Assembly: GCA_037379345.1 (NCBI GenBank)
Contig: CM074515.1
Location: forward strand, 10,788,001 to 10,852,000
DNA: 64,000 bases
Direction of reading: 5' to 3'
Source of the DNA: Perna viridis
Lineage: Eukaryota
Every line of letters begins with the position of its first letter. Positions within the stretch are counted from its first letter, which is position 1. Made by a program: the position numbers and the translations under genes. The notes under the pieces were generated by a model. The model ran no database searches. It was not told the origin of the DNA and saw only the letters and a list, made by a program, of their open reading frames with translations. Shown here one piece after another: positions 15,701-64,000 of this stretch.

Positions 15701-18700
15701 GTGGGAATTATATGAATAAGGAAAAAAGGTATTATAAAGCACACACAATTAAATAAGACTTGGATGTGACCAATCATTTCAATAAAATTTGTATTTCCTT
15801 TTTTCAGAGTTTGATTTTTCCATACAAGCCAAATGGTCGTTATTCAGTGAAGCCTGATGGAACTTTACAGATTGACAATGTACAATCTAATGATGTTGGA
15901 GAGTATGAGTGTGAGGCTCTCAACACTGTCGGCACAGCATCAGCATCTGTTCAACTTAAAGTCAGGGGTAAATAATGTCAAACAATGTTATAGTACTTGA
16001 CAGGGGTCAAAAATTATAAAAATCAGGTTAGCCTTTTGAGCATTTAATGGAGAAGTTTTATGAATGGAAGGGTTAGTTATTGATTAACTTAGAAAAATAT
16101 CCATCTGTCAAGCATTTAATGTTTTCATTGTAAAGTAAGGAAGTGGAATTATTCAGAGAATTATCGTCAATTGAATGAAATGGTTTTTTTTTTAGTTATA
16201 CCAAGTGTTGTAAGGGGGATAACTCATTTCATTTAACTTATTTCTTATTGATCTATCTACTTTCAAACAATTTTTTTTTTAAATGTTTTGTAGAAAATGA
16301 TTCCAGGCCTCCTCCAATCATTAGAATTGGACCACAGAATCAGACCCTGGCTACAGATGAGACTGCCTTTCTCCACTGTGATGCTATTGGTAACCCTACA
16401 CCGACCATCCGCTGGTATAAAAATGGCAATATTTTGTCCCCTGATGATGTTAGAATACAGCAGAAATCTACTGGAACTTTACAAATATCAGGTACTGATG
16501 AGGGATTATTACTGATTACAGTGTTTCATTTCATTTGTTCTCTTTTTGCAGTAGAACATACGATAAGGATTGTTTAATATTGCTCCTAAAAATGTAATCC
16601 TTATTCACTTTATTTCAGGACTAAGTGTTTCTGATACAGGGATGTATGCATGTAAAGCAAGCAGTGAGACAGGGGAAACAACTTGGTCATCTAGTTTAGT
16701 TGTTAGAGGTACATTCAGGCAAATTTAGATCTAGCATAATCATTAATGATAAAACCTTGAGTAATCACTAAATTCATCAATTAAAATCTAATAAAAATAA
16801 TGTATAATGATTCAAATTCATTTTGTGTAGTGTTTAAAATTGTTGAATATGGAAAAATATGAATTAAAAAAACTGCAAAGAAAAATTTTTGTGAAGTTTT
16901 TGTAAAAAATCATACATTGTGTTTCTTGTTACAGTACCTGATGGCAGTTCAGTATTATTTCACCGAACACAGGATCCAAAATACTTTCCAGGACCTCCAT
17001 CTCAACCTGTAGCCATTGAGGTCAAGGACACATCCATCATGTTGTCTTGGAAACCGAACAGTAACTCCGGAGCCTCTCCAGTTTTTGCTTACATTATTGA
17101 GTATTTCAGTCATGAGACCACAGATGTGAGTTTTCCAATTTAACTTTTACCATTATTTATGTATTGTTAACCCTGTTCTTACACTGAATTGTAGAAAGTT
17201 ATAATTTTCATTAATATAATATACTTCCATTTCCATTCCTTTTCACTTGTTTGTTGTAAAAGATAAATCTATTTAGCAATGTGATCATGACTTGCTATCT
17301 AGTTGTGTCTATTATGCTGTGATCTGTTTTGGGTAACTATTGACTAGGTTCTGCTGAATCAAGGTTACAGTTGTCTCTTTTCTGTTTTCAGGGTTGGGTA
17401 GTAGTAAAGGAGACAGTTCAGAAAGAGACACATACAGTTCATAATCTTCAGCCAGAGACACCGTATGTCTTCCTTGTAAAGGCCCAGAACTCTCATGGCA
17501 TTGGTGTACCTAGTCCTATCAGTCAAATTATCTCCACTAAACGTAAGTAGACGAGGCAAATATTGTTGTATAGGTGTACCTTGTCCTATCAGTCAAATAA
17601 TCTCCACTAAACGTAAGTAGACAATACAATATTGTCATATTGGTGTACCTTGTCCAATTAGGAAAGTAATTTATATGAAGCATAAGTGTCTAGACATATA
17701 TAGTATTACAGTCGAACTTCACTCGCTCGAACTCGGATGGCTCGAACACCCGGGATTTCTCGAACACAATTCAAAGTACCAAAATTTTCTCCTATATAAT
17801 TAATATAAATAACCTTGGATTTCTCGAATTTTGATTTCTCGAAAACTTGAACTTACTAGTCGGTCCGTTCGGTAATAAATGTTAGAGAATAACCCTCACT
17901 AACTCAAACTTGTCAGCCATTTTGTCAGCTTGGGTAATAAAAAGTGTGAAAAACTGAAACCCTATCACTAATCAATGTCATTTTAGTTAATTACAGGTAA
18001 TATTTAAGTCATCACTAATTAGGTAGTTTTGATCTTAACATAAAACTAATTGAAGTTCTAGAATGTTCCGAAGTCGGTATAATGAAACCATGAAAAAAAA
18101 ATCGGATGAAAACAAATTATTGACCAATGAACCTGCACTCTGGACATTTTTAAAAGAAAACTCAGCATTTTTAATGTCCACAAGTCGACATACTCTTTCG
18201 AAAGCGAACGAAAAAGACCCAGGAACTAACACAACTTCGAAGAAAGTAAGCAATTTGTAATGATGAAGTCGAACTCGGACCAGCAACGAAAGAAATCCGG
18301 AAATATACGAACTTCAATTTCTGGAACTCCCGATAACTCTAATTTCAGTGATCCCTTGGAGTTGGAGCTACGGAGGTTCGACTGTATTTGACATAATCCT
18401 TCCAGTTTTATTAGATCAAAATGATTTAAATGGTAATTAATTTCATTTGTAAATCTTCAATTGTCTAAAATAATATACTGAAATGTGTAAAAATGGTTAA
18501 TTAGTTTTAATAAGACACCAATTAGGTATACACTATAATGAAATATAACTATCTAAATAAGACACCAGTTAGACATACACTATAATGAATTATAACTATC
18601 TAAATAAGACACCAGTTAGGTATACACTATAATGAATTATAACTGTCTTAATAAGACACTAGTTAGGTATACACTATAATGAATTATAACTGTCTAAATA

Positions 18701-21700
18701 AGACACCAGTTAGTGTATACACTATAATGAATTATAACTGTCTAAATAAGACACCAGTTAGTGTATACACTATAATGAATTATAACTGTCTAAATAAGAC
18801 ACCAGTTAGGTATACACTATAATGAATTATAACTGTCTAAATAAGACACCAGTTAGTGTATACCTATCTAAATAAGACACCAATTAGGTATACACTATAA
18901 TGAATTATAACTGTCTTAATAAGACACCAGTTAGGTATACACTATAATGAATTATAACTGTCTAAATAAGACACCAGTTAGGTATACACTATAATGAATT
19001 ATAACTGTCTAAATAAGACACCAGTTAGTGTATACCTATCTAAATAAGACACCAATTAGGTATACACTATAATGAATTATGACTGTCTTAATAAGACACC
19101 AGTTAGGTATACACTATAATGAATTATAACTGTCTAAATAAGACACCAGTTAGGTATACTCTATAATGAATTATAACTGTCTTAATGAGACACCAGTTAG
19201 TGTATACACTATAATGAATTATAACTGTCTTAATAAGACACCAGTTAGGTATACACTATAATGAATTATAACTGTCTAAATAAGACACCAGTTAGGTATA
19301 CACTATAATGAATTATAACTGTCTAACTAAGACACCAGTTAGGTATACACTATAATGAATTATAACTGTCTAAATAAGACACCAGTTAGTGTATACCTAT
19401 CTAAATAAGACACCAATTAGGTATACACTATAACGAATGATAACTGTCTTAATAAGACACCAGTTAGGTATACACTATAATGAATTATAACTGTCTAAAT
19501 AAGACACCAGTTAGGTATACACTATAATGAATTATAACTGTCTAAATAAGACACCAGTTAGGTATACACTATAATGAATTATAACTGTCTTAATGAGCCA
19601 CCAGTTAGTGTATACACTATAATGAATTATAACTGTCTTAATAAGACACCAGTTAGGTATACACTATAATGAATTATAACTGTCTAAATAAGACACCAGT
19701 TAGGTATACACTATAATGAATTATAACTGTCTAACTAAGACACCAGTTAGGTATACACTATAATGAATTATAACTGTCTAAATAAGACACCAGTTAGTGT
19801 ATACCTATCTAAATAAGACACCAATTAGGTATACACTATAACGAATGATAACTGTCTTAATAAGACACCAGTTAGGTATACACTATAATGAATTATAACT
19901 GTCTAAATAAGACACCAGTTAGGTATACACTATAATGAATTATAACTGTCTAAATAAGACACCAGTTAGGTATACACTATAATGAATTATAACTGTCTAA
20001 ATAAGACACCAGTTAGGTATACACTATAATGAATTATAACTGTCTAAATAAGACACCAGTTAGGTATACACTATAATGAATTATAACTGTCTAAATAAGA
20101 CACCAGTTAGGTATACACTATAATGAATTATAACTGTCTAAATAAGACACCAGTTAGTGTATACACTATAATGAATTATAACTCTCTAAATAAGACACCA
20201 GTTGGTGTATACCTATCTAAATAAGACACCAATTAGGTATACACTATAATGAATTATAACTGTCTTAATAAGACACCAGTTAGGTATACACTATAATGAA
20301 TTATAACTGTCTAAATAAGACACCAGTTAGGTATACACTATAATGAATTATAACTGTCTAAATAAGACACTAGTTAGGTATACACTATAATGAATTATAA
20401 CTGTCTTAATAAGACACCAGTTAGTGTATACACTATAATGAATTATAACTGTCTAAATAAGACACCAGTTAGGTATACACTATAATGAATTATAACTATC
20501 TAAATAAGACACCAGTTAGTGTATACACTATACTGAATTATAACTGTCTTAATAAGACACCAGTTAGTGTATACACTATAATGAATTATAACTGTCTTAA
20601 TAAGACACCAGTTAGGTATACACTATAATGAATTATAACTGTCTAAATAAGACACCAGTTAGGTATACACTATAATGAATTATAACTGTCTAAATAAGAC
20701 ACCAGTTAGTGTATACCTATCTAAATAAGACACCAGTTAGGTATACACTATAATGAATTATAACTGTCTAAATAAGACACCAGTTAGTGTATACCTATCT
20801 AAATAAGACACCAATTAGGTATACACTATAATGAATTATAACTGTCTTAATAAGACACCAGTTAGTGTATACACTATAATGAATTATAACTGTCTAAATA
20901 AGACACCAGTTAGGTATACACTATAATGAATTATAACTGTCTAAATAAGACACCAGTTAGGTATACACTATAATGAATTATAACTGTCTAAATAAGACAC
21001 CAGTTAGGTATACACTATAATGAATTATAACTGTCTAAATAAGACACCAGTTAGGTATACACTATAATGAATTATAACTGTCTAAATAAGACACCAGTTA
21101 GTGTATACACTATAATGAATTATAACTCTCTAAATAAGACACCAGTTGGTGTATACCTATCTAAATAAGACACCAATTAGGTATACACTATAATGAATTA
21201 TAACTGTCTTAATAAGACACCAGTTAGGTATACACTATAATGAATTATAACTGTCTAAATAAGACACCAGTTAGGTATACACTATAATGAATTATAACTG
21301 TCTAAATAAGACACTAGTTAGGTATACACTATAATGAATTATAACTGTCTTAATAAGACACCAGTTAGTGTATACACTATAATGAATTATAACTGTCTAA
21401 ATAAGACACCAGTTAGGTATACACTATAATGAATTATAACTATCTAAATAAGACACCAGTTAGTGTATACACTATACTGAATTATAACTGTCTTAATAAG
21501 ACACCAGTTAGTGTATACACTATAATGAATTATAACTGTCTTAATAAGACACCAGTTAGGTATACACTATAATGAATTATAACTGTCTAAATAAGACACC
21601 AGTTAGGTATACACTATAATGAATTATAACTGTCTAAATAAGACACCAGTTAGGTATACACTATAATGAATTATAACTGTCTAAATAAGACACCAGTTAG

Positions 21701-24700
21701 GTATACACTATAATGAATTATAACTGTCTAAATAAGACACCAGTTAGTGTATACCTATCTAAATAAGACACCAGTTAGGTATACACTATAATGAATTATA
21801 ACTGTCTAAATAAGACACCAGTTAGTGTATACCTATCTAAATAAGACACCAATTAGGTATACACTATAATGAATTATAACTGTCTTAATAAGACACCAGT
21901 TAGTGTATACACTATAATGAATTATAACTGTCTAAATAAGACACCAGTTAGGTATACACTATAATGAATTATAACTATCTAAATAAGACACCAGTTAGTG
22001 TATACACTATAATGAATTATAACTGTCTTAATAAGACACCAGTTAGTGTATACACTATAATGAATTATAACTGTCTAAATAAGACACCAGTTAGGTATAC
22101 ACTATAATGAATTATAACTGTCTAAATAAGACACCAGTTAGGTATACACTATAATGAATTATAACTGTCTAAATAAGACACCAGTTAGTGTATACCTATC
22201 TAAATAAGACACCAGTTAGGTATACACTATAATGAATTATAACTGTCTAAATAAGACACCAGTTAGTGTATACCTATCTAAATAAGACACCAATTAGGTA
22301 TACACTATAATGAATTATAACTATCTAGATTTTTGTTCTTTGTTATAGGATTCCATGTTTTTGAACCCAGGATAAACAAGGATGAGATTCGTACCAGAAT
22401 GAGTGGAATAGTTGTTCAAATAGAGAATAGTGGATCAGTAAACTCAAGTGCTATCTGGTTTGAATGGAAGGTGTGTACTAGTTGTTATTATAAATAATGC
22501 ATGCTTAACACTTGTTTTGTTTTATGATATTGATGCTTGGATAATAAACAATGGAACAACAGAATGGTTTACATCAAGATCACTCTCCATTATAAAGACT
22601 ACATAGATGAAAATTTGAACACTTCAATAGTTGTTCCAATGGTGATTTATTTGATTTTTCTTCATTCCAGCCTGTCAAAGAACCTGAACTGATCCAACAC
22701 TATGAGATAGTGTACAAACGTTTGTTCAACCTAGAGGACGAGACAGTAGGACAAACAAGGAGCATCCTGGTAACTCGCAAGGCAGCTCACAGTAGGACAG
22801 AATCATACACCATCACAGGTCTTAAGAGCCATGCATGGTACAAGATCTGTGTTCGAGCATTCAATGCTGATATCGGATCACAGTGTAGTAACTCTGTCAT
22901 TGTTCGTACAAATGAGTCTGTGCCCACTGAACCACCTCAAAACATTGTAATAAGTAAAGATGGGAAGACACGGGTGTTTGTACAATGGCTACCTCCTCCA
23001 GACCTCTACAGGAATGGTGATATAAGAGGTTATGAGGTATATTATTGAAAATTTCAATTTTTAATTTCTTTAATTTTGTTTGAAAAAAAAATAATATTAG
23101 GAAATTCCTTGCTTGATTTGAGTTAAGACTTCAAATATAATTTTTAAAATTGTGACATTCTACTCATTTTGATATTGAAGGAAGACTGTGAATTAAGTAC
23201 TAACTTAAATAGAGTAATGTTTTTAACACCCTTTTGAAGAGTTTCTTCATATCATTTTTTTACTGCATGATGATAATGAAATAATTTATTTAGGAACAAA
23301 ATGGTGTTGTTACCCCCATGTAACAGGTCAAAATTGTACATTGTATTTAAGCAATTTTTCTGCATTTTGGGATTTCACTTTGTCCTTTGTTCACTTTCAG
23401 ATAAAGTGTATAAGTGATGACGGGAAACATGACCTGAGTGTCAGTATTAATGGAACCAGGAATAAATACACCATTGTTAATCTGATGGAGGACATGACTT
23501 ACTCTATACAGATGGCAGCTCGTACAAGTAAAGGGGTTGGAGTCTGGAGTAAACCTTATGTTGTAGGTGAGTAAATGCTGGATACAGATGGCAGCTTGTA
23601 CAAGTAAAGGGGTTGGAGTCTGGAGTAAGCCTTATGTTGTAGGTGAGTAAATACTGGATAGAGATGGCAGTTCATCCTAGTAGAGGGGTCAAAGTCTGCA
23701 GTAAACTTTATGTTGTTGGTGAGTTAATGCGCAATACAGATGGCAGTTCATACTAGTAGAAGTGTCAAAGTCTTCAGTAAACTTTATGTTGTAGGTGAGT
23801 TAATGCTTAATACAGATGTCAGCTTGCACTATTGAGTAGGTCTGAGTTGTTAGTGAAAATGCACTTATATGTTTTTAGTGTGAAGAATATAGTCAGTTTT
23901 GATGAAATTTACATAAATGGTGGCTAACATCAGTACAGAGATGAAAAATTCTAAAATCTGATGTTACAAATATTTTTTCTACTGATCAGATTAAAATGGC
24001 TATGGGAGAGTTTTTTCTGTCTGTCAGACTGTCTGTTCTTGTAAATGTGTAAAAGTAGGGATAGCAATGATGGAAATTTTAGCCTTTTAGTGTAAAGTAC
24101 CTTTGTTTGCCATTTGACAGTCTCATTCTGAAATCATGATGACAAAGATTGGGTGAAATAACAATGTCATTGATCCAGAAGTGTTTCTCTCATTTTGATA
24201 TAATTCCTGTCCTAAAATCTTGATTAACAGATGTTCTGAAGGTTCTTATTTCAATTGATTCAAATTAAAAGACCATGGCAGTTGTCAATGATATAATAAA
24301 TACCATATAATTCCACTTAAAAGGTTACAAACTGAAGGACAATGTTAAGTTTATGTTGCAGTCTTAGTTTGATGTTTGGATAACAAAATTGCAGTAACTA
24401 TATCCTGAAGTTAAAAATGGTCTGAAAAAATGTGTTAAGGTTATATAGGTCAACTTGTATTATGTCTGAACCCTTCATTTAATGAGAAAAATATGATTAA
24501 TTTTTCTGATGTGCAATAAAAAGGAAATTAAAAAAAATGATTGTTTGATAAAAGTGGGATAATATTCTGTCGTTATTTTAATGGAGTTTTACAGTTGTAA
24601 AGTGATAATCTTTCTATTGAATAATTTATGACCATATTTTTGCATAAGTAAATTGGATTTGCTAATTGCTTTAGCAATTAAATCTTTGTAACAATGTGTT

Positions 24701-27700
24701 TATTCACCAATAATGACATTATATTAATTTTCATTCTTAGTAGCATCTTTTTTGTCTCTCTATTAAGATGCGAATTAGTTTAATGCCTGCAGCAGAAATG
24801 GCCTATCCATCCATTTGATCCAACAGACATTATTTTCTCATTTTTCGCCAAGATTGGGTTACAGAGACTGTATTAATAGCATAACAAAGAAATCGTGGAC
24901 AGATTTGGTTTTTATTTGATGTCTCTTTTAATGAAATGTGTCTCCTGACAATTCAGTAATAATTGAGGAAATTTGCAAAATGATTGTTTTCAGATTCAAG
25001 TTCTAACAGCCTTGTCATTTGAGTCTTAGTTGTTTCTTTATTGCCATTTCGAAGAAATGTAGGATATATTTAACTTAATACAAAAACCATGCCTTTTATG
25101 GATTTGTGAATTAGAGGTTTATGCTCAAGATCTGAATTGAAATTCTGTTCAAAACTTAAAGTAAAAGGAGAAATGAAGATGTATTCTGTAACATTTCCTA
25201 ACAGATCTTTTTTAGAACAGTGTTTTCTCTATTTACTCATCCGACTAAGCAAATCTTGACTAAAATTCCACCTTATTTATCTTATAGTAAATATTTTGGC
25301 TGAATCTGATTAAATAATTCTGAAATTCGAGGACCAGAAATGATTAATCTGAAAAATATTCCCTTAGTTCATAATGAGTTGTTGTTATTCAAGAACCATT
25401 GTTCAAAACAGGCCCCCATCAATTTTCAAAAGTAATCAGAATGTATTCAATTTAATGGATCAGTACAAATGCCCGGACAATTAAAAGATTTAGACAAAGA
25501 AAATATTTCACCTCATGACACACTGCAGCGACACCGTTTCTAAACGATTCCATTATTCAACTTAAACGTGATAAATTGTTCAGAAATAAAAACATTACGA
25601 CTCTATTCATGTCCAGGATTGTGATTTCATTGTAAACTTCAATTGCCTCCGCAATTTAATTGATGGTGGCGTTAACTAATTATGGAACCACAAATTTTCA
25701 CAATCCTGGAAATTGTAAAGTCTATTAATGTTTTCTTTAGATTTTAATCAGGGAATTGCTGCCGTGAAAAATGACATTAGAATATGTGGATGTTCCCCAA
25801 AAGAGAAACAACCTCTTTAAGAACTCTTAAACCAGAGCAGTCGTTAGCATGATAATTGTATTACACATCTGTTCAGTAGTTGACATTTTAGGGCATTAAA
25901 TTTAATATCTCTCCTTCTAGCTGAACTTAAAATGGCGTGCAGAAAAAATGTCCAATCGTGCTGCTAGCTCATTGTTATTAGGTTCATTACGACACTACAA
26001 TCAATTAGGTTTTTATAAAGCTTGGAGGTATTTTAGTCATTAAACGTCTGATACTTCCTTTACACAATGATAGAGGTATATTACCCTGCCTGGTTTAGTT
26101 TGGAGATTGTAGTCTTAACATTATTAATGCCATCTTCTCCTGCCTCTGGGTCATCGTTATGGTAACATCCATTCTTTGTTTCCTTCACACTTGATCTTTT
26201 AAACAAGTGATGTGCACTTGCATCTCTATGACCATGTTTCTTAAGGCTTTTTTTGCCATTCGTGATTTTAATCAAATGGAATTTGGTTATTTAATCTTTC
26301 AAAAGAATAGGATACAAAAATTTATAATAAAGATACAAATTGAAATGACTCATAATGCTAACTGTTTTCTTGAATGATCAAATGTCTTTGAAATCATTTC
26401 CAAGCTCTGGGGTATACATGTTCACAAAATTAAAAGTATTTAGATCATTCTTGTAAAAGAACCAAAGAGAAGATGACTTTGTTCAAAATTGTGCAAATTA
26501 TGTTTAATGAAAAGATATAAATGCTACAAAATTTGTATGAGGCTTAATTTTCAAGACATTATTATATTTATTGTAAAAATTTGAAGGCCTGCAATTTCTG
26601 ATAACATAAAAACAACTTGTGCACTTTTCATTATAGGACCAGAGCAGCCAAGTTTGATGGAGGAACCATGGTTTATTGGAGTACTGATTGGTGTAGTCGG
26701 TGGTACTCTGTGGTTGGCCTTATGTATCTTCAGCATCTGGTTGTGTAAGAAAAGAAAGAGTAAGAAGAAAATGATGCAGAATGGACTCTACACAGGTAAC
26801 TCAACAATTGGTTGCTATGGTAATAGTGAGTAGGGGATTGGTACTCTAGCTGTAGATTTCTTGGTATGCGATGCAAATTCACAAATAAAAAAGTTTGGTC
26901 AAGAGATTTGTTAAGTAGTGATTTTGTTACTGTACTTTTTTCTTAATTCTTTTGACTTGCAGACCTTGATAAGAAGGAAAGTTTGAAAAGTAGAATTATA
27001 TTTTCTTCCATTTAACTTGTTTGTTCCTATATAATAAACATAGCTTTGGACGTTATGTTTTTTTTTTATGTTTTTGCCTTTTTTTCTTTCACTAAAAAGT
27101 ATTTGTTAATATGGATTTTTACTTACATTTTCAGTTCCTATGCATAAAGGTGAAGATCGTCCTTGTACTACATTCTATAGAAATGGATATAATGAAAAAG
27201 ATTCACGTAAGTATACAATCATTTAGCTGATAAGTAATCAGGTTATATGACAAAACATTGATAATGCAGATAATAGTATCACAATGTTAATTAACTATAC
27301 TGAGTGGCTGAGATTAAGTCAGAAACAGAGGCGGTCGTACTGCAATTTTCAAAATAATCCACAAAAGAAGAAAAAAATTCTGAAAATGGAAGAATAAATC
27401 AGTCATCATAGTACTGATCTACAGGCTGGAGTTATAACTATGAGGAAGTTACTGTTGCCTTATTGCAAGATAACATTTTAAGAAATGACAGGTTGTCATG
27501 CTATGACATAAAGCTGACAATACAGATTAACATACATTAACTATGGATAAAATTGTAGTGAAATAAACTGCTGGTTTTTTGTCTGATCTTCTGAATCAAT
27601 TCACAGTAAGATGTTAGTGAAATCTGTTGAAGAAAAAGTTACAAGAAGTTAAAATAAGTGATATTTTCTGGTAACATGCCCCATTAATGTTTGTTAAATC

Positions 27701-30700
27701 TTAACATACTTATATTTTAATCAATTGACTTGAGTGCTTGGGTATTATATATATCCGAGCTTACACACTATGAACTGCACAGTTGTTTATATTAATGGTA
27801 AATGATACTAATTATAGTACAAACTTCACCACAAGCTGTTAGCCTTTTTTGTGATATTACAGTAACTTTTTATTTTCCATTGAACAGGTAATTTTTGTTA
27901 ATTTGTCAGTGTGTAGTTTAAGATCAACCAAATCCTCCACAGTACTCTGGACCATACATTAAACAGGTCCAGTTTAATTATAAGTCGATAATACATGTAC
28001 TGTTTGGAATTTATGGACTTTTTTTCATCTGGACATTTTAATGTGAGAGTATCTATGATAACTAGACTAACTTTCTCTTGTTTTATATGTTAAGAAATTC
28101 TATGGCAGAGTTATTCTACTCCTCAACCTAAATACACAAAATTTAAAACAAGTAAAAACTTGTAAACTTGAATTTCCCCCAAAAAGACATTTTGTCCGGT
28201 AAATTTAAAATAAAATATATCATTACGTTAAACTGTGTTATTGGCCTTTTATTAGTTATACTTAACAATATGTTCCTTGACAAGCTGTGAAAGACCATTC
28301 ATATGGTAACATGTGTCTCTGTTAACGCTTGTTTACTACAAGTGGAGTTGAAGGATATATTCACTAGAAAAAAAATGTTACCATGTTAATAAACACTAAT
28401 TAATTTCCTTTACTAAATTACTATGATATGGTTCACTCCCACATGTTGCAGGTTTTTTATATTCAGTTTTTTTTTGTATAGTCTGTCCAATTATTGAGAT
28501 ACAATTGTAAAAAAAAAACTATATAAATTGATAAAGGATGAAAATTCTGCAAAATTACCCTTGACATTATTTAGATATGATCAATAGAATAATAATATTG
28601 AGAGATTGTTAGATACAGCTGGTGTTAGAACACTTGATAGATGTATAATCTTCAATTAACAGTTAGCATGGCTGATTAATCAGGTAGAAAGTGAACCAGA
28701 GAAAAAATACTTTCTATATTATTGTTTTTGTACTAGATATTGGACATTTTCTGAGTATGAGGAAAATACACATTGAAAAATCTTAACTTTGAAAAAGTGC
28801 TAACAAAACTAAAACTAAAATCATATAACTGTAAGAAGGACATAAAATAATGAGTAATTATAAACTATATTTATTTTACAAAAACTGTTAAAAGGAAAAA
28901 ATATTATGTAGTAATTAAAATGGTAATGTATATCCAAAAAATATTAGCTCTGCACCTGTAGAAGATTGATAAATTGATTGTATTTTACTTTATGACATAT
29001 ATTTATTTTGAAATGAGAACTATTTTTACATAATAAATAAAGATCATAATCTTTATTTGCAGAACACATGTCTCCAGAAATCACCAATTTATTAGATGGG
29101 CACAAAGAAGTGGAAATGCAGGATCATCCCAATATATATAATGTACCACAGATGAAGACATTTTATCATAAACAAGACCCTGTGGCACCATATGCCACCA
29201 CAACCCTGATTAACGCAGGAGCAGCTCAACACATGGATCATCACATGTTCAGGCCTATACACCAGAACAGTGGATCAGGTGATAGCTGTTGTAAACACGA
29301 GTGTAGCGGAGGATCTAATACTGACAACAGCCATTCAGGTGGTCACCATCATGATCACAGTGATCATATGCAAAGTCCAACCAGTGATAGCGGCAGTCAC
29401 ACGACTGATGAAAATGGAATGTTGATCAAGAAAGGACGTAAAGGCCCTGGACAGATGCTTGTTCCAAAACAAGCTATGGTTAACTGGGCTGAGTTTTTAC
29501 CCCCTCCACCTGAACATCCTCCTCCAAGTGAGGTTGGGTCAGATTCTCCTGCAAATTCTCTCCAGTATGCAGAGGTTAGTCAGAATCGTGCAATGGCAAA
29601 CAGAAGTCCCATGTCTCCAATGTCTAAGATTTCGTCATGTTCCTGTCCTGTACCCCACAGTCAGCACCCTTCGTGTGCTCAGCAGTGGAATGTCCCACCA
29701 CCAGCATATTCTGATTCAGGATGTGCGAGATGTTGTTCTCCTAAATACTGTGACAATGGACAATATAGTGCTATAAACAGAGTTCAGTCCCCTTGTTCTG
29801 ATACGTGGGGACAAAGAACGATAGCGTGTACAAATCCCTCACAGAGGGTCCCTGTAGATTTATACTGTCATAATAGAGTGTGTCATAGTGATCATGAACA
29901 GACTAATATCCATCCCTTACATCATTACAAAATAAATAATAATGAACAAGAAGCGGAGCATAATTGTATGAGTGATAGTGGACATTATTCTCGTTGTCCA
30001 ATGGATGGACATTGTATGGACAGGGCATGTCAATCATCCCTTCCAAGTGTAGCTAGTGAATGCCAGTCTAGGTTAGTATTTCTGTCAGAATACTTGGTCT
30101 AATTAAAGGGGCAGATCAAAATTAATAAGGTGTTTTGAAAATACAAAAATTGCAAAAAATATCAAAGCCAGGCATATTCTGTCATCTCACTTATCTAATA
30201 GGCTTGACTTGAGAAAGGCAACAAAATTTGTGAATTTTAATGTGTGCTGAGAGGTATAGAGCAGTTTCATATCTAACCTTGCATATGGAATGCTAAAAAA
30301 ACAATTTTAACAGTCAATTTTAACAAAAATATTAATTAAACGGGAATGTTATTCATTTTTGAATTTGAAGTATATTGTCCATTTATTGAACAGGTGAAGA
30401 GATTTAATTGTACATTTATAGTCGACTATGAGTATATCAGTGGTAGATAATATCTTTTGAAATTTTAATTGGTTACATCATGAAAAGATACAGACATCAA
30501 ATTCCTCCACATTTCTAACTTTACAGCAGATAAAGTCATTGAAAAATTTCTAAATGGCAGTTCACTGTAAATATTTGATTACTTCTATAAAGACTTTTAA
30601 TTGAAAACAAAAGTTTGACTTTAGTTCTGTGTTAGATCTCAAAAGAATTGATGGGTATTATAATTACTTCTTCTTAACAGAAACATTCTACAGTAAAAGT

Positions 30701-41790: not shown

Positions 41791-42328
41791 AAATGTCTAC
41801 AATGAAATTTTACTACACGGTCTTTTTCAAGTAAATTCTTTGAGTTCATGATAGACGGTGTCGTATCCGTCTGCTTATATTCATCTTTGGGCAGCTATTT
41901 TCAGTTCCCGCACAAGAAATAAAAAAAAATTGGTATCAAATTTATTATGGTGTTTGCTTTATCTTCCTGGTCCCTATTTCAACTCGTTTAAAACCACTAT
42001 CGTTGTGCAAACGAGGCAACGAACATGGTGGACTAATTTTTGAATCTGGAGAGAATTTGTTTTGAAAACTCAATAAGATGAAGATAATCAGTGCTCAGAA
42101 GCAATTAAATGACGTGGTGTTAATTAGATCCGCTGCAATGAACATTATATCTTAACAGCAAAAATGTTGTTTTTGGAAACGTGAATTTGATCATATAAAC
42201 ATTGGACCCGAGTGAGTACTAGCCTGTATTAACCTGTCTATAACTGATCTATTTACAATTTGACTTTGCCATTAAAAAAAGATATAAAACATCTATCCTA
42301 TAAACATTAAATATACCAATATATCAAC

Positions 42329-42970
42329 ATGGGGGGTACAGGCAAAGCACATCGAAATAAACAAGCTAGACAAAGTAAACAACAGAAAACAGATAACAGA
42401 CAAGCTGCAACCGGTAGCGTATTCGCCAACCTTTCGGCTATAGATCGAAACCGACTACTATCTAGTGAAACATCTGAACATGCTGAAGACGCTGAGGTTC
42501 TCATTGACGCAGTTTTAGGTGCCCTCACGAACAACGATATCATTGATCGTTTTGTTTCCGCCCTCGTAGAAATTCCAGACATTAAAAGTAGGTTGTTGGA
42601 ACACCTAGCCCCTACATTAAAATCAGAAATAGACAATCTAGTTCAACCGCTCCATGAAAACATAAAACAATTAAACGAAGAAATAAGTTTCTTAACGAGT
42701 TTCTTCAAGCCGAGCTCGATATTGAAATAGACCCAACCGATATAGACCGATCACATCGTCTTGGTATTAAAAAACCTAATGTTGACAGACCTATCGCAGT
42801 AAAATTTGTGAATTACCGACTAAAAGAGTTCATATATTCCAATAAGCGATATTTAAGACCGGGGTTGTATATCAATGAGTCACTATCAAAAGGCAGTTCA
42901 AATCTTTTCTACAAAGCTAGACAACTTAAAAAGGGCAAATTCATATCAGAAACTTGGATCCGAGACGGCC
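42329..42970 (+). pseudogene. Disrupted LINE ORF1-like gene (coiled coil + L1-type RRM/CTD)
   Basis: After a frameshift near 42700: DIDRSHRLGIKKPNVDRPIAVKFVNY...GLYINESLS...WIRDG; cut at the 3' end by a MITE. Confidence 0.75.
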
Positions 42971-42972
42971 TT

Positions 42973-43119
42973 CATGCCAAGACAAACCGCTCCAAAATCT
43001 TTAGACCCTGCTGAGATAATAGATACATTAATGACCACATCTGTACTATCACGTTACCAAAGATAATTAGTGCCTGTAGGGGGCAGACCAGAAATTTTTG
43101 GGGGTATTTCTTGGCATGG
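42973..43119. mobile_element. ~150-bp MITE, copy 1
   Basis: CATGCCAAGA...TCTTGGCATGG; near-identical to 43997-44148. Confidence 0.8.
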
Positions 43120-43621
43120 ATATATGTTTGAGAGACTGAATGCTTGTAATAATAAGAAGAAGACGAAACCGACAAAATAGAATATGCTTTCCCATTTCGT
43201 TTTGGGAACATAATAATGACATAAAAACTACCAACAACATTTGCAATTTGATTGCGGTGATAAATAAATAAATAGATAAATAAAACCTCGACTTGACTCG
43301 TGTACGTCGGAATAGTATGAATATCTGTAAAGTACGATGGTTCAGTATGTCAATAAATAAGGATGGTGGTCACTTGAGACAATTTTGCTTTGTAAACCTA
43401 GGGTCTAGGAGGTCTGCCCAGTGCTTGTTCTATTACCTATGTGTAGGTTTTCTCTAAGAAATAAAGTCAAGTCTTTACGATCTTTTTCCTATTTTTTACG
43501 ATTTTTAGGCTATTTTTATGAATAATTTTCATTGTCCGACGGCGGCCATGTTAAACCGTGGCTTTTGGGTAAATTTAAATAAGGTCGTCGGAAAGGCCTT
43601 GTAATTGGCTATTTTTATATA

Positions 43622-43796
43622 CAATGAAACCTGTCTAAACCGAACCCTGAATAATCCGAAAACCTGTCTTAACAAGATACTTCTTGATGATCCTTTGTGT
43701 CAAATTTAGTGTATTTTAACCTGAATGCATTGAACTCCTTTCTAAACCGAACAACCTTAAAGTCCGAAAGAGATCCAGTTTAGACAGGTTTCATTG
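43622..43796. mobile_element. Tc1/mariner-type MITE, 175 bp
   Basis: Perfect 19-bp TIR CAATGAAACCTGTCTAAAC, TA on both sides. Confidence 0.92.
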
Positions 43797-43996
43797 TAAA
43801 TGTATATTTGCATATTCACAACTGTAATATAGCCAGAGAACATTTCTTACTTATTTCAATATTTCATTTAATCTAAGCGGTTGTAAGTATATAACAATCT
43901 TAGACCGTCGTTTAAAATTACCCCCCCCCCCCCGAAAAAAAAAGTAAATACAAAATGAAGAAAACCTTTCCTATGTGCGAATTTCTAACGTCTATA

Positions 43997-44148
43997 CCAT
44001 GCCAAGACAAACCGCTCCAAAATCCAACTTTAGACCCTGCTGAGATAATAGATACATTACTGACCACATCTGTACTATCACGTTACCAAAGATAATTAGT
44101 GCCTGTAGGGGGCAGACCAGAAATTTTTGGGGGTATTTCTTGGCATGG
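43997..44148. mobile_element. 152-bp MITE, copy 2
   Basis: TA|CCATGCCAAGACAAACC ... GGTATTTCTTGGCATGG|TA (15/17 TIR match). Confidence 0.85.
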
Positions 44149-44504
44149 TATTTATCAAACAGAACAATGGTACTGTGACTGCATGTACAAGGGAAAGTGA
44201 ACTATCTGTTACCTTTGTGCCGAAGCAGTCAGGTAAAAGTGAAAACACAAAACCGAGCAATGGAAAACAGCATAACAGCCGCCAAACACAAGACGCGAAA
44301 CCAACAAAAACAAGATAACAAAGCCAATGAGAAGAAAACAGATAATGCGAATACCATGCAAGTCCAGGCCGAAGTCAATGCACCACCTAATGATGTGATC
44401 GAACTGTTATCTTCTCAGAGAAACGGTTAATCATTTCTATTGAAATAAACTACCGTTGTATTGTATTGTTTATATAGCCACATGTTCACGTGTTGTTTAT
44501 TTTT

Positions 44505-46380
44505 GTATAATTCTGGATGGGGAGATATTGATGCAGGGGTCCCCCAAGGTCCTGTTTTAGGACCTTTCCTCTTTTTTATCTATATAAACGATATTATAGA
44601 TGGTGTAGACTGTCATATAAAACTTTTTTGCAGACGATACATCACTATTTGTTATTGTTGATGATAAAAATTACATAGATGTTGCAGACAGGTTATCGAC
44701 AGATTTATCACATACTCGAAATTGGGCTATTAAATTTAATCGTCCAAGACTGAGTCTTTGATGTTCTCTCGAAGAAATGTAGAGAACCATCCTGTATATT
44801 TTGGGGGTCCGGAAAACCAGGTAAATGATGTCAATGTACATACACACCTGGGTCTTGACTTCCAGAATAATGCAAAATGGAATAGCATGTAAATATGTAA
44901 ATATATGTAGATCTACAAAAAGGTATATAACAGACTAAAATTGCTTAGAATGTTGAAGTACCAGGTCTCCAGGAAATATAGGGATATTGTTTGGGATAAC
45001 TGTACACTATATGAATCGAATTTACTCGAGAATATAGGCCGGTAGAATTATTACTGGTTTGCGGATCAATTCCTCAAAAACAAAGATGTATGATGAATTA
45101 GGGTGGGAACCATTATATAAGCGCCGTGAGAAGCATAGGCTAATCTTGATGTACAAGATAGTTAACGACCTTGCCCCAGAGTATTTATCAAACATTGTAC
45201 AACCTTATATCTTAAATATACATGATTATAATCTCAGGCAACAAGTCAACAGTAACAACATATGTTTGCCTGTTTGTAATACTATGGCATATTCTAAGAG
45301 CTTTATACCCTCGACTATTCGACTCTGGAATCAACTTCCTACATCAACAAAAAATAGTCCATCTGTTGATGTTTTCAGAAAGAGGCTGAATTCAGCCAAC
45401 CCTGGAGCTCCTGAATACTTCAAAACAGACAACAGGAAATAGAATATATATTGCATTGTCAGTTGAGGTGTGAGGCTAGCAATCTGAAGCATCATTTGCA
45501 GATTCATCACCTGACTGACAATCCACACTCTCCACACTATGGAGACAAGATCGAAGATCATATTCACTATTTTATGTTTTGTCCACATTATCAAATTTAG
45601 AGGCGGTCACTGCAGAGCGTTTGTGCTAAGCTACAGATCGATTTTAACTTACATAACATACTTCATGGTAATGAACACCTGACATTTAACTATAATGTCA
45701 AGGTGATGTTAGCTACTCAAAATTTTATTAAGAATACTAAAAGATTTCAGTAGTACACAATTGTAATGTATAATGCTTATAGTGCTGTGCAGGTGGTATT
45801 TTGTTGACGGACTAATGTATATATTGTATTTTCTATTATGTTTAATTAAAATTATTTTTTGTTTCATAATAACAAGAAGAAATTTTGATATACTTTTTCC
45901 AAATTATTTCCTTCCTTCTTTTTACATGTATTTAGATGACAAAGTATAAAATTTAAAGTTTCAAAGATAAATAAATTTGGCATACATATTTTCACTAAAT
46001 TCTAATTCTTTTAATTTATGCGATAAACAATTTTAAATTATAACTTAAAGTACTTTAATTAATTATTTATTTTAGAAGAATACTAATAGTACTTACCATA
46101 ACAGATGATAAAATTATTAGCCAACTTCCAAGAGAAACAGAGTTATCTTTCTTTCTATGTATTCTTTTCTAAATGTCCAATATGTTATATATTATGCCAT
46201 CATGTAAATGCCTTGTATGGAGAGGATATATATAGGCCTAGCCTGCTATTCAATCCAATGGAGAGGATATATATAGGCCTAGCCTGCTATCCAATCCAAT
46301 GGAGAGGATATATATATAGGCCTAGCCTGCTATCCAATCCTATTCATTATTTATGAATAAAATATGATTAAAACGAAAAC
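44505..46380 (+). mobile_element. 5'-truncated, decayed CR1/L2-clade LINE (RT, C-terminus, probable 3' UTR)
   Basis: GVPQGPVLGPFLFFIYINDI, frameshifted LF-ADDT, ELGWEPLYKRR, SFIPSTIRLWNQLP; ORF ends ...KNTKRFQ* near 45753; tail-like aataaaatatgattaaaacgaaaac. Confidence 0.85.
46217..46340. repeat. Tandem repeat ~41-43 bp x3
   Basis: atggagaggatatatataggcctagcctgctat(t/c)caatcc. Confidence 0.9.
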
Positions 46381-50712: not shown

Positions 50713-52767
50713 CTATGGAATAGGTGTCTTCTCAGGAAGAGGTCCAGCCTCCTCATACATCGGTGGCACGATCAGTTGTTCATACCCTTTTGGGGCAATG
50801 ATCGGGATCTTATTCTTCTCGGTGTGTAAATAGTATTCCGACCTCTGACTGGTCCTGTCTCTGGAAATCATTAACATATGGAACAAAGCAACCAGTCCCA
50901 TCAAACTAGCCCCAACGGCAGCCACCCAGAGACACCATGGGCATAAGAAGTCGATATCCATGTAGCCATTTCCCATGTAAGCTATACCGCCCTTTAGCTG
51001 GACCATGTATGAAGCCACCCTGATGATAGCCATGAAGTAGAAGAAAGCTGAAAAAGAAAAGTTGATAATCAGAATAGCCCAAACATTTATAAATTCACCT
51101 TTAAGTGAGCCTTTGCATAAAAAGTTATCTGGGTATATATAGTGTCATAGTTCTGCATCTGGGAAAGTAAGGATCTGGACATAATTTAATTTTACCTTCA
51201 ATAAATATATATTTCTACATAGAGAGTGCAAAATGTTTCATTAACGCATAAAATGTATCCATTATAATACTACTAAGTTACTAAATATCATATTGTAAAC
51301 CCTTTACTCCTATCCTGAACTATCCAAGTCCAAATGAGTGACTTACCCGAGAGACTTTGTGTTGAGCAGGCCAATCTTCCTGAGTGTTTTCCCAAACCGC
51401 CATATCGAGTGTATAGTATGGCTCCAACCAAACCAATTACTCCCAGACCCAGACCGACAGATGCATACCATGCTAGCTCATGACGGGCGTGTCGGGCAAC
51501 CTCTGTAAAACATTCATTACGCATTATATATTAAGTAATGAGTATGGATAATGTGAGACTTTTTGAAACAGTAAAATTCTAGTAACCAAGTAACCACTGA
51601 ATGATCATTACATACTAAATTTACTTTTTCTACATTTATTTCTCTGTCGACAGTCTCGAGTCTCCGGGAACATATAAAACTTTTATCGTGTTTTTCATAT
51701 AAAATTTAAAAGACGGGTTTTTTCAAGTACCTGGTAAAGTCTTCCGTATGAAGTAAACTAACAAGTTAACAAAGAATGTAATGAAACCGTGCGTAACAAA
51801 CCATTGAAAAGTAAACATAATAATCTTCATTATGTTAAACTCCATATTTGGCAATCGCTCAAAACAAAAAATTGAATAAGTTGTCTATACTTGGATCACA
51901 TTTCAAATGATACTATGAACATGAGACAACTACATGTAGATAAATGTATTTTGCTATCAGGTTTCAAACAAATACTCTGTTTAATTCTACTCTTCCTGTG
52001 GCTTATTGATTTATAGGAATGTATATATTTGGAGTAATTAATATAGGTTTTCTGTAACCAATCAATAATTTTTGCTTGATGTATTAAATATGTCTTTAAT
52101 AATACTTTGTTGGACTCAATAGATATAAGCAACTGCTCAATATTAAAGCATTAGTATTTGACTATTTATTCTGAAGATTCAAATATAAATAAATCCATAC
52201 TTTGAATTAAATAAATACAATAATTAATTAATACATGTCCTTACCCACTGAACTGTGAATGAAGTCCGCGGCTTGTCGAAATTCTTTTGGGATGTCGTCC
52301 ATTTTGTCGTCAGATTTACTGTCCTCATTCTCTCCAACCCAGTCTATCCTTTGCCTTTCTTGTTTTCTGTAACATTTATGGTAGCATTTATGGTGATGTC
52401 TTCTGTGGTGTCTTTTGTGATGTCTTTTGTGGTGTCTGTCGTCATTCTCTACCTCAGGTCTGTCAACTTCTTCGCTACTGTCTTCTTTGCTTCCACTATC
52501 ATCGTCGTCGTCGTCGTCACCAACATGTTTACAGACTCGGTAGTACCACAAACCGAAAGATATATATACTTGCTCCTTATGGGGTTTCATGAGCTGTGTA
52601 TCATCAACCCGCATTCCGTCATCCTGTGGCATTATGTCATCCATTGGATTGACATAAATGTCAGTTTTTACCACGGTCCATCCTGGACTTGCAATTGCTA
52701 CAATCTTCAAAATCAGGGCAATCACAGAAATGAACACACACGCCTTCAGTTTCGTTCCAATCTCCAT
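50713..52767 (-). CDS. Claudin/PMP22/EMP-superfamily tetraspan protein A, 337 aa; complement(join(50713-51047,51347-51502,52245-52767))
   Basis: N-terminal TM then SPGW...SFGLWYYRVC signature, 4 hydrophobic segments, two phase-1 GT-AG introns, open frame of 1014 nt. Confidence 0.85.
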
Positions 52768-54049
52768 GTTTGTTTGTATTTGAGTCTTATGACGGTTATT
52801 GGGGAGCTTTTTTACCTGAGCAGCCAGGTAGATCTATACTTAGCTATGAGATCAATAGACCATAGGGTTTTGTTTGCTACTTTATATAACTTATACAGTC
52901 ACGATTTAACTGAATACCCTTTGTTTGGTACCTTGATTTATTGTAAATATATTTTATGATATAAAAAAACTGAAACCTTATGATTCATCAGGACATGCGC
53001 AGTATTCATCCATAATAATGAATTCATTTTTTGAGAGAACGTGTACACTTATTTACGCATTTATTTTATGTATAGAATTATGGACACAGGCTGGTGTTGT
53101 ACAAGGGGTACGTGTGGACACAGACTGGTATCGCCAGAGGAGGAAGTTCGACTAAGAATAGTTTAGTCTCCAAACCATCCTTTATATTTCAAATCAATCC
53201 CACCAGTGGTTTATCCAGAGGGGGAGGTTGAGCAGGTTTGCGCCCCCCTCTTGTATGAAATTTTTTTCATTTTCATGTGTTGAATTGGTAAAAATGATAA
53301 ATACATAATATACATTGCATAACATTGTTTATGCTAATCTTTAAATCAAGAAGTTGGTGCCTTTTCCCGACATTTCAAATCAGGTGTAAGATCAGGTACT
53401 TGTATTTTTATAGCAGCAATATTCCTTTAATGTTATAATCGGATCTTCAGACTTGAAAAACATCATTGTAGGGCGACATTGTACTGAGTATTAAACAACC
53501 CTTCAAATTGGCGGGTTACACATTCTTTATGCATTTGGTCTATAATTAACGGTTTACGGCATGAGATGCAATAATTGCAAAGTCCCAGTACAATATATAC
53601 AACTTTATTTACATCTGGTGAAAATACATGTGTACAGTTCGGAAGTCAGGGACAGACTCCCCGATTCAACTAGACAAAAAACATATTCTATTTTTGTACA
53701 GAGAATCATAAAAAACTTACACAACATTCAGAATTCTTTAGGTATTACATCATTTAGCGATAATTGCTATATTGACAAATTTGCTTGAGGCGGTTTCTTA
53801 GCTCATTGACAAACATAAAGATTAACAAGGAATTAAAGAACTATTAGGCGACCAAAGTCAATTACAAATAAATAAATGTCAATCAATTAATATAGATATT
53901 ATAGATACGAAGAAAATCTTAACACGATAAAATAAACAATGTCCAGCACTTAAAGTTCAATGAAATTCTGTTTCTCCTAAAAACGTCCAAGGGGTCCGGC
54001 TGTCCGTTTTCTCTTGGTTATAATTACATGCCAAAACAAAAGCTGTATC

Positions 54050-59997: not shown

Positions 59998-61647
59998 TCA
60001 TGAAACAAGTTTTGTCTCTGGATGTAGTCCACAATCATCTTGAATATATGGTACGACCAATTCCTCGTATCCTTTTGGAACAATAATCGATAATCTGTCG
60101 CCGTTGCCCGTTATTGATTTCGTTTTTAAATCGTAACCTTTCTTTTTTCTAGAAATTATTACGAGAAGAAGAAAGGCTGAAATATCCATCAAAACAGCAG
60201 AGAAACCTCCTAAAACAAGGCACCATGGTGAAATGAACCGAATGTCCTTCCCGAAATGGTCATCGAGTATCTCGTTTTTCTGCAGTGATCGGAGTTGAAC
60301 GACATAAGCTGTCACTCGCACCACCGCCAACCAGTACAATAAAGCTTTAAAATACAATATTGAAATATACAAATAGAAATCTAGACGAATACAGAAATTT
60401 TAATGCATTATTTTGAATTATTTGAGTAATTGAAGGAAAATGACAGGTAAAACTAGACCAACAATCTACATTTAGTCCGTCGAAGTATCTTAATTTGTTT
60501 TGTCCGTCGAAGTATCGTGGCTTATCCATGATGCATGATATCTCAACTGATAAAAAAGTAACGATCGGTTCATGAAAGTTAATTAACAACCCTTGATTTT
60601 GTTCATACGTGATCTGCAAGTAGAAATAATTTAAAAAATGAACAGGAAAAAACTGGGTTGGTTTTGAGTTGGCATGACAGTTTAGACTGTATTACAAGTT
60701 ATCGAGCTTACATGACAGAAACAGTGAACAGCAGGCAAGTTGCCCAAGGTGAACACAACAGCCACCATTTCGAGCATATGAAACAGCAAATATAATACCA
60801 CACATTCCCAATCCGAGTCCTATTGTCACATAAATAGCAATTTCCTGACGGCCTTGGCGTCCGAAATCTGAAATAGTAGCATAATACTGTGCATCTTCAT
60901 CTGTGTAAAACACATACTAATTTATACAAGAATGACAGAAAAAGAATTAAGTCAACATTAAAAGGAAGAAGAAAACACACACACACACACACATGAAGTT
61001 GAGTACTTATTGGATAGATTGACTGGTATACCAGGGTAGTAGACCTGTTCTTTTTTTCTGGACTTGTATGCAAAGTGCAAAATATCACTAACAAGATTTT
61101 ACGATTTAAGTGGGCATCTTTTGCAACAACAACAAAAAAAAAAGAAATAGTGAAAATCGAATCTTGTTATACCAAAAGAAATCTGACATTTCTTACCAAC
61201 AGCTATACAAATGAAGCTTCTTTCCTTCATTAACTGTTCAGGAACACTGATCCAATCAACAGGTTTATCGGATTTTACACGAGTATTCTTGAACTCATCC
61301 TTAGAACCCAAGTTACACTCTGTCCGATAGCTATGATGATAACATTGGTGGTTTTTGCACAAACGCCATTGATAGCCGGCTTTATAAGCACCAAGCGGTC
61401 GTTCCTCCGAGTTATTTTCCTGTACTTCGGGTGTCTTATAATAACTCATACAAACTTTATAGAACCAGACACCAAACTTAATGCTTATATTTGGTCGTTT
61501 GTCAATAGAAGAATCTGCAACCATGTCAAATTCTGGTACTTTATACTCTAGAACTACCCAACCTGGCCCGGCATAAACTATCATTTCGGCTATGAAGGCT
61601 ACAATAGAGAGCAATACGCATGATTTCAGTCCAATTTTTACCTCCAT
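59998..61647 (-). CDS. Claudin/PMP22/EMP-superfamily tetraspan protein B, 328 aa; complement(join(59998-60344,60712-60900,61197-61647))
   Basis: GPGW...KFGVWFYKVC; same 3-exon phase-1 structure and shared motifs (H.G.LAC, PWCL, PKGYE.L.VP) as paralogue A; open frame of 987 nt. Confidence 0.85.
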
Positions 61648-64000
61648 TTGTCTTTTCTCATCAATTTAACTTCTAGCAAAGAATATATGTTGTAGAAACG
61701 TGATGCAATCCCACAAATTAGAGACCTGTTCAACACATATGTAAGATTTATTTAATATATATAACTACACATCAAATATTCATTCAGTTTTAGCTTCATT
61801 ACCGTACTGTAAATTGTAGTTATTGATCTAATTCTGGTTCTGACTTATGCTTTTCTAAAAATTCGATACCTATCCAATATTCAGGAAATTTTCAAAGAAA
61901 GATTCTAATTAATTTTGATCACCTTACAACCTTTCCTTTGGTGTCTAAGTCTTGCAGCATCGCTGATTCGGAATAGAGAACCTAACTTTTTCATCTCAAA
62001 CTATAATCGATATCTGCAAACCAATCACGAAACCATTTGGTTTCAACGATTTTGTAAGTATGTATGTTAAAGTTTCTATGGACCTGTCAGTTAACTAAGG
62101 TGCCTTGTATGAACAAAACTGCTATGCGCTCTGAAGAATTGATCGAACTTAATTGTTCCATCACAATTTGTAAAAATATATTCATTTAACAGGTAACACT
62201 TTACCGTCATGCATGAAGTTTGTATACCGACTTTCTAGTAGAGCGATAATATTTCCAAATAAGCTTCAAAAACATTTAATAATATTGTTGCTTGAATCTT
62301 TATTGCAACTAAAATGACAATTTAACGATTTATTGTCTTTCATATTATTTTCCGTATGTAAATGGGATGGAAAAGTTAAACGACAGTAGTAGCTCCTGTA
62401 AGATGTAAAACGAAAGGAGAAGCTAAAATAAAGATAGGACGAAAAAAAAAAAGATTTTATCTTAGGTTGGGATATTGAGCCAAACATCATATAAGTTACC
62501 CAAAAAGTGAAGAGAAACAACCCGATGAAACATAACAGCTGTAAAGAACAGGGTCAAAAGGAAGAGTTCGGTGGAATATTACACTGGTAAAAGTAACAAA
62601 GAGGACAACAAAATAACCTCTGTAACGTAAAGGTAAATGCGAAACGAAGGAATTGAACATGACACAAAAACGATTGGATTTGACATAACAAAAACCAAAG
62701 AGATCAGAAATCATTTAGAATCCGAATTTCACTTGTACTTGAAGAAACTGTTATTCATGGAAAATAATGCATAAAACAGAAAAGATCATTGAAACTTCCG
62801 GGTTGAGTATTACATCATAAAAAGATAGAAAGATATGGGATCACAACACTTGTAATAAAAAGATATATCAGTACACTCATAAAGAAAATTATAAAAAAAA
62901 ATATGATAAGCCTTAGCACTACAAAATGATACTACGATAACAACTGATATGTTCTATTCACCTAAAAGTAAAATTCAATATTCTAAAGGCAAGCAGTGTT
63001 TAATAACATAACCCAGTAAATGAAAGGATACATTGGCTGAATGGGTGATATTAAGTAAAAGGAGAAAAGTCTGTAGGAATTTCACTATCAATATTTATAT
63101 GAAACGGTTAAATGGAACCAAACCAAAAGCCATTTACAATATACGATAAGCAGCACATCAATTATCAAGTAGATTTTTGCGTACTATTGTAATTTATCCC
63201 ACCTACTCTACCTAACCAGAAAGGAACATTACAAGCCAGCTCTGCATTTTTTTTGGTACATTTTTATTTTGCCAAGTGCTTCGAAAGTTCAATCAAGCAC
63301 AGAGACCATATTTTGAAATTAGCATCTGTGTACAATCTAGTCAATTATGGTATACCCAGATAATAAACTATGCTTTGTAAATGTCGACAAGAATATTAAC
63401 TTTAGAACTCGATTCGATATACAATGGTAGATATCCCGTTAAATTGGAAGATTTGTTTTAAGTAACCTGAATCCTGATATAAAATTAAGAAGAACCCTAC
63501 AAGGAAATCGAGAACTAATTCTCTCAATATGAAGAATATTTGAGATTACTGACTGACTCATTCCTTCAGAAAACACATACTCCAACTGACGATATATCAA
63601 GAAATGTCTTGCTATAACCAAAGGGATTGTGTAGGTGTAACCATACGGTATCTTCGTACAAGCTACAAGGAAATACAATAGTGTCAATATCTCTTATCTA
63701 TTTTTGGTAGACACCTCGATACTCAACCTATATAAAGAGTCTGTATGATGAGGAAAGGTCAGGTCCCATTTTCCTATGGTTAAAGCCAACTCACAAGGTT
63801 CAAAACGACTTGAATCATTCGAACATCGATAGTTAAACTGGACAAAAGCTGAAGTCAAATTTGTCTCATGGATTGGTCCATTTTTGGAAACGCCTGACTG
63901 TAAGTATAGCTCACGAGAAATATCGGCAAAGTATTGAAATGGAAGGACAATTCAGAGTCATAAAAACGAAGGTGCATGGCAAATCCTGAAAACGGAAAAT

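Follow-up and report, generated by a model that had tools for sequence, protein, structure and literature searches.

Four tandem 5′ splice sites in a predicted Robo gene of Perna viridis: a probable mirage-type minisatellite spliced from its first donor

When the end of an exon is repeated in tandem together with its 5′ splice site, so that four strong donors stand in series, which of them is used, and what, if anything, are the others for? This question is raised by a 64,000-nt stretch of Perna viridis DNA (contig CM074515.1, positions 10,788,001 to 10,852,000, forward strand; free of N), hereafter called the window, whose own coordinates are used throughout unless another contig is named. 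An earlier note on this DNA had described the four donors behind the last ectodomain exon of a Robo gene and had considered two readings equally possible: a functional one, in which the additional sites compete with the true donor or act on U1 snRNP, and a neutral product of slippage.

The gene appears to encode a Roundabout (Robo) receptor with an ectodomain of five Ig and three FN3 domains, one transmembrane (TM) helix and a long cytoplasmic tail, a prediction that rests on exons matched singly. Pfam searches, run exon by exon, place the five Ig domains and FN3 domains on the + strand between 3.4 and 23.6 kb, and among PDB structures the Ig1 exon matches ROBO2, ROBO1 and Drosophila Robo best.

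Several other features of the window deserve mention. A 3.8-kb satellite at 18509-22327, with a 47-bp unit and higher-order periods of 78 and 94 bp, occupies most of its intron and stops about 21 nt 5′ of the apparent acceptor ttgttatag/GATTCC of the exon ending at 22470; the 3′ end of this exon is confirmed by RNA contigs, and its acceptor is predicted from the sequence, the RNA placement having begun at 22400. Downstream of Robo, broken ORFs with reverse-transcriptase-like motifs on the + strand (42300-45450) probably represent a decayed non-LTR retrotransposon. The minus strand carries two similar tandem multi-exon genes for small membrane proteins (50716-52833 and 60001-61665), with like ORFs of 143/201 aa and 133/188 aa, one of which contains a His/Asp-rich stretch.

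The repeated exon end

Tandem Repeats Finder (TRF) returns positions 23506-23824 as a single array of period 76, with 4.2 copies, 86% matches and 0 indels. With the units aligned, 3, 16 and 15 of 76 positions separate copies 2, 3 and 4, respectively, from copy 1, which corresponds to a divergence of 4-21% across the echo units; between copies 3 and 4 the count is 8/76 (Table 1). The tandem array and the copy divergences reported before are thus borne out, as are two further statements: the hexamer GTGAGT is unbroken in 4/4 copies (23567, 23643, 23719 and 23795), and translation continued beyond the true donor reads GGT GAG TAA, which, given the frame of the exon, places a stop at 23572-23574, before the TM exon. 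Beyond a 15-nt stub (14/15 matches) there is no full fifth copy, and the alignment score stops rising past this point. The 76-bp unit has no second occurrence elsewhere in the 723-Mb genome and is therefore not a dispersed repeat.

Table 1. Positions of the Robo donor array, its sister array and the neighboring exons in the window
Feature	Position	Strand	Details and evidence
Sister array, same Robo gene, period 70, 2.9 copies	17503..17701	+	Last 40 nt of FN3-1 exon plus 30 intron nt; TRF, Pfam fn3
Last ectodomain exon, C-terminal half of FN3-3, 166 nt, ends in phase 1	23401..23566	+	In-frame translation; Pfam fn3; RNA contig pieces 23399-23563 with GT..AG on both sides
Repeat copy 1	23506..23581	+	Last 61 nt of exon plus true 5′ splice site, 15 intron nt in all
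True donor GTGAGT	23567..23572	+	Sole donor seen joined to 26637 (RNA contigs of X11, X12, X17)
Intron holding the echo copies, 3070 nt, 31% G+C	23567..26636	+	RNA contigs; first AATAAA/ATTAAA hexamer at 23990
In-frame TAA	23572..23574	+	Met by any read-through of the true donor
Copy 2	23582..23657	+	3 differences from copy 1; pseudo-donor 23643-23648; Arg-codon CpG decayed to TG
Copy 3	23658..23733	+	16 differences from copy 1; pseudo-donor 23719-23724; T instead of A at position -2
Copy 4	23734..23809	+	15 differences from copy 1, 8 from copy 3; pseudo-donor 23795-23800
Fifth-copy stub, 15 nt	23810..23824	+	TRF and alignment
Next exon: juxtamembrane segment, transmembrane helix, basic stop-transfer stretch	26637..26795	+	Translation; RNA contig pieces

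Tandem repeats commonly cause assembly errors, and the array might in principle stem from misassembly or collapse in the reference. We give this next to no probability, as separately assembled contigs show the same copies gap-free and with SNPs of their own. That is, a DNA contig from another sample (X3) crosses the array without a gap and spans 22400-26985 with ten single-base differences, and a Logan contig from another run (L024) matches 22298-23795 at 99.7%, again gap-free. All four copies are thus found in two independent DNA assemblies other than the reference, and hence the array is real; the comparison of copy number, which the earlier note had considered informative, finds X3, L024 and the reference alike in the few haplotypes covered, all of them seen as contigs.

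The same contigs reveal differences between individuals. At 26985-26991, X3 has 233 other letters in place of 5 nt, an indel difference in the intron at that place. Position 23526 is G in all three RNA data sets described below and in both non-reference DNA contigs (a synonymous change, ACA to ACG), and position 23000 is T in the RNA runs and in X3, so the reference holds the rarer alleles among the samples seen.

The array is not the only one of its kind in this gene. At the end of the FN3-1 exon, a sister array (Table 1) carries the true donor GTAAGT at 17543, which is echoed as GTAAGT at 17613 in copy 2, and has decayed to ATAAGT near 17682 in copy 3.

Donor use in transcripts and divergence of the copies

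Which of the four donors is spliced can be read from transcripts. Assembled contigs of three transcript-like RNA runs from three studies (X11, X12 and X17) were placed on positions 22400-27400; the contigs of X11 and X12 are near-identical, and these two runs may be non-independent. Each run yielded one long contig in which exons with GT..AG borders follow one another as ...22470, 22671-23036, 23401-23566, 26637-26795 and 27135-27206. The last of these, a short exon that follows the TM exon and precedes a large cytoplasmic exon near 29060, is seen in the RNA contigs and is inconspicuous from ORFs alone.

The sole junction leading out of the array, in the contigs of X11, X12 and X17 alike, joins 23566 to 26637; the acceptor proposed earlier is confirmed by this, and the proposal that the tandem donors are used as competing sites is not supported by it, at the resolution of contigs, from which rare variants drop out. 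Neither a junction from a downstream donor nor any sequence of copies 2 to 4 is present in the RNA contigs of the three data sets, and positions 23569-24400 have no RNA contig coverage at all. Intron fragments from elsewhere are retained in X17 at low depth (2.5-3.4 vs 43 for the mRNA contig). Given that contigs lose rare variants, the data show dominance of the first donor rather than total non-use of the others, and rare use of the later donors, followed by removal of the products through nonsense-mediated decay (NMD), is compatible with the contig data.

A profile search with the FN3 exon was dominated by giant multi-FN3 proteins, the useful match being an exon fragment of a relative (P0031), and a word search for closer relatives with the two exons yielded nothing beyond fragments of the window itself and P0031. 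The sole relative found is a distant one, represented by a Logan contig (L002) with FN3 exons at 65-67% protein identity and about 80% DNA identity. Its orthologous exon ends in a single GTAAGT donor, and there is no echo within the 280 nt of intron on that contig. With one donor and no echo in L002, the array is lineage-specific.

Divergence within the array tells a similar story. Identity to the L002 exon, counted per 76 positions, falls from 65 in copy 1 to 63 in copy 2, 53 in copy 3 and 50 in copy 4, and the CpG of an Arg codon is retained in the exonic copy alone. Of 76 columns, 22 are variable; if these are placed at random, all six columns of the donor escape variation with P=0.12, and the longest stretch free of it, 9 columns, is ordinary (P=0.68, same permutation). 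The idea that the donor hexamers are specially preserved, as raised in the earlier note, does not hold up, since their survival within the array matches chance and L002 lacks the array. Judged by these comparisons, the echo copies seem to behave like unconstrained DNA.

We read the array, with a probability of roughly 80%, as a tolerated and decaying minisatellite of the mirage type (see below), of which only the first donor is used. A 76-bp segment across the 5′ splice site of the last ectodomain exon would have been duplicated in tandem several times, perhaps by replication slippage or unequal exchange, and the grouping of the copies (2 near 1, 3 near 4) suggests that an old duplication was followed by one yielding copies 3 and 4 and by a recent one yielding copy 2. 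The most upstream copy would have remained the true exon end and donor, with copies 2 to 4 becoming intronic 5′ pseudo-sites that are not detectably used and decay, probably neutrally. Such an array would be tolerated because the splicing machinery picks the first donor after the exon, and also because a leak to a later donor would include the in-frame TAA and make the transcript a target of NMD. Supporting this reading, minisatellites are frequent in this DNA, with 56 arrays of period at least 20 covering 8.5% of a 264-kb sample around the window.

Known systems and rival explanations

One precedent comes from a human gene. In the human F7 gene, the first unit of a 37-bp minisatellite (VNTR) lies across the exon 7 - IVS7 boundary (Borensztajn et al. 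2006, PMC1557585), and the 5-9 identical pseudo-sites that result are functional yet silent, the most upstream site being chosen (PMC1557585). Robo shares with F7 a first unit that spans the exon-intron boundary and an authentic donor followed by near-identical 5′ pseudo-sites, of which the most upstream is used. In contrast to the 5-9 identical, length-polymorphic 37-bp units of F7, the Robo array has four 76-bp units that are 4-21% diverged, with no difference in copy number in the few samples; moreover, pseudo-site silence has been established experimentally in F7, whereas in Robo it is deduced from transcript contigs.

Lancelets offer the other precedent. Their "mirages" are minisatellite-like tandem duplications of exon-intron boundaries, known from Adh3, globin, troponin C and PGBD5 (PMC3087553, PMC3902484), which leave regular splicing undisturbed and whose mechanism of origin is unknown (PMC3087553, PMC3902484); both papers cite Canestro et al. 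2002 for them. As in mirages, an exon end plus splice site is arranged in tandem here, splice signals are kept in many of the repeats, splicing is unharmed and several genes per genome are concerned. The points of difference are that mirages come from cephalochordates, affect both 5′ and 3′ boundaries and show length and even somatic instability, whereas donor-side arrays are those examined in detail here and the few samples showed no instability. The exon-intron junction of the Robo array lies inside unit 1, later units carry copies of the donor and the upstream site is the one used; recurrence at many exon boundaries of one genome is likewise found, in the form of the sister array and of at least 20 distinct strict-consensus arrays on contig C1 (see below). 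The Robo array thus has mirage anatomy and, as far as contigs tell, mirage behavior, and belongs to a kind already described.

Two other comparisons fit less well. Intron-breeding tandem arrays in human genes, reportedly described by Zhuo et al. 2007 (PNAS), are said to give rise to new, often alternatively spliced introns between their units. These arrays and ours have in common tandem repeats with splice-site motifs inside genes; unlike them, the Robo array shows neither unit-to-unit splicing nor splicing from a later unit in the contigs. Regulated unproductive splicing (AS-NMD) and soluble decoy receptors are recognized by detectable alternative junctions and conserved regulatory sequence. 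Use of a later Robo donor would similarly yield a premature stop or a secreted ectodomain, but neither alternative junctions nor conserved regulatory sequence were found in Robo, as judged by the contigs and L002.

This bears directly on the functional half of the earlier note. Were the echo donors to compete with the true one, a regulated share of transcripts would carry the TAA and either tune receptor dose via NMD or encode a secreted ectodomain of 5 Ig and 3 FN3 domains. There is something to be said for this, and it is at the same time the counterpoint to our main reading: four strong donors stand in series, with copy 2 in an almost identical 76-nt context that includes its exonic part; the in-frame stop comes straight after the true donor, ahead of the TM exon; and rare or unstable isoforms could escape contigs. 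Nonetheless, we regard such competition as very unlikely. The RNA contigs of three data sets contain no later-donor junction and nothing of copies 2 to 4, L002 manages without the array, donor conservation is not in excess, and the identical pseudo-sites of F7 stay unused as long as the upstream site is intact (PMC1557585). Plain intron retention, in addition, would give the same truncated protein, and the array would be unneeded for it.

It is also conceivable, albeit unlikely, that the array is kept by weak selection as a group of U1 snRNP sites. Its later donors would then not be spliced, and it would either aid definition of the 166-nt exon or keep the AT-rich intron from being cleaved and polyadenylated prematurely. 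The echo donors follow the true donor and precede the first poly(A)-like hexamer (23990), a position that would suit such a role, as would the presence of two such arrays in one gene and the finding that AGGTRAGT minisatellites are, among the matches listed, about 7-10 times commoner than those of control 8-mers of equal or higher single-copy frequency. Against it, preservation of the donors within the array is not in excess (P=0.12), the sister array has lost a donor, L002 copes with a single donor, and the true donor already recruits U1 at the same spot. Nothing that we found backs competing donors or a U1 cluster specifically, although the genome-wide excess leaves some room for a U1-related effect. 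The verdict that function and neutral slippage are equally possible can therefore be revised: its anatomical basis stands, and the functional side is weakened by the junctions, L002, the chance-level donor survival (P=0.12), the drift of the copies and the donor loss in the sister array, which favors the neutral side.

What the Robo array does provide is a natural experiment on the choice of 5′ splice sites, with four strong donors in series of which the first is taken. It echoes the lesson of human F7 in an invertebrate axon-guidance receptor and gives no sign of a new route to soluble Robo.

Donor-bearing minisatellites across the genome

Whether arrays of this kind exceed chance in this genome (723 Mb, 33% G+C) can be asked by counting. 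About 0.8% of pre-duplication sequence in the 264-kb sample is captured in a repeat unit, so that a gene with about 20 donors would be expected to have about 0.2 echoed donors; Robo has two.

For a genome-wide count, we recorded three copies of an 8-mer spaced 40-70 nt apart. The donor consensus AGGTRAGT gave 494 matches, with at least 20 distinct arrays on contig C1 alone, and has 34,642 single copies genome-wide. The same motif reversed is more frequent as a single copy (54,791) and gave 289 matches, with 2 arrays on C1 and about 8 on C1-C3 among the matches listed. The donor-dead variant AGCTRAGT, whose single-copy frequency is similar (9 vs 8 for the donor motif in 264 kb), gave 98 matches and about 18 arrays genome-wide among the matches listed. 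A shuffled control, GTGARTAG, which is flawed in that it contains GTGAGT, gave 216 matches and about 3 arrays on C1, again among those listed. Donor arrays therefore exceed those of control 8-mers by about 7-10-fold, a figure obtained with one strict motif and with arrays counted by eye among the matches listed. Extrapolation from C1 suggests about 200 arrays with at least three AGGTRAGT copies in the genome, vs about 20-40 for control 8-mers.

About half of the donor arrays sampled seem to start at the ends of coding exons. Among 15 distinct arrays, we found 7 whose first donor opens the array and is preceded by an open frame of at least 150 nt, more than the null expectation of 12.7% (P=0.0013). 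Two of these frames pass Pfam thresholds: an ankyrin-repeat exon followed by 14 copies of a 39-bp unit made of its own end plus 5′ splice site (L027, G000:C1:42569642-42572799), and a RabGAP-TBC exon followed by a compound array with a 72-bp unit, again comprising its own end plus 5′ splice site (L031, G000:C1:64990312-64993464).

Base composition was considered as a cause of the donor excess and rejected, as the G+C content of the arrays (0.338) is close to that of the genome (0.327). A fixed breakpoint near the U1 footprint was likewise rejected, the donor being located anywhere in the unit and the exon share of the unit ranging from 0 to 0.85. For the acceptor-like motif TTTYCAGG, the raw matches exceed those of the reversed control at a ratio of just 1.7 to 1, and some of these arrays belong to a dispersed satellite family.

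A 7-10-fold excess is not predicted by a purely random, neutral birth of arrays. Tentatively, and accepting that the opposite is the better bet, we suggest that minisatellites spanning 5′ splice sites form a class that is over-produced or preferentially kept, such that the process behind lancelet mirages would operate genome-wide in another invertebrate lineage and both Robo arrays would be among its products. If true, this would imply either a hotspot of mutation tied to the 5′ splice site or selection in favor of clustered U1 sites. The excess itself should be taken as provisional until checked against gene annotation; if it holds, the anecdotal mirages of lancelets would become a measurable phenomenon in a second lineage.

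One further array on C1 (G000:C1:68673098-68676179) is of a different make: it consists of more than 50 copies of a 58-bp unit, each with a pyrimidine tract plus CAG, 14 nt and AG/GTAAGT. Containing both acceptor-like and donor-like signals, these units resemble a repeated mini-exon.
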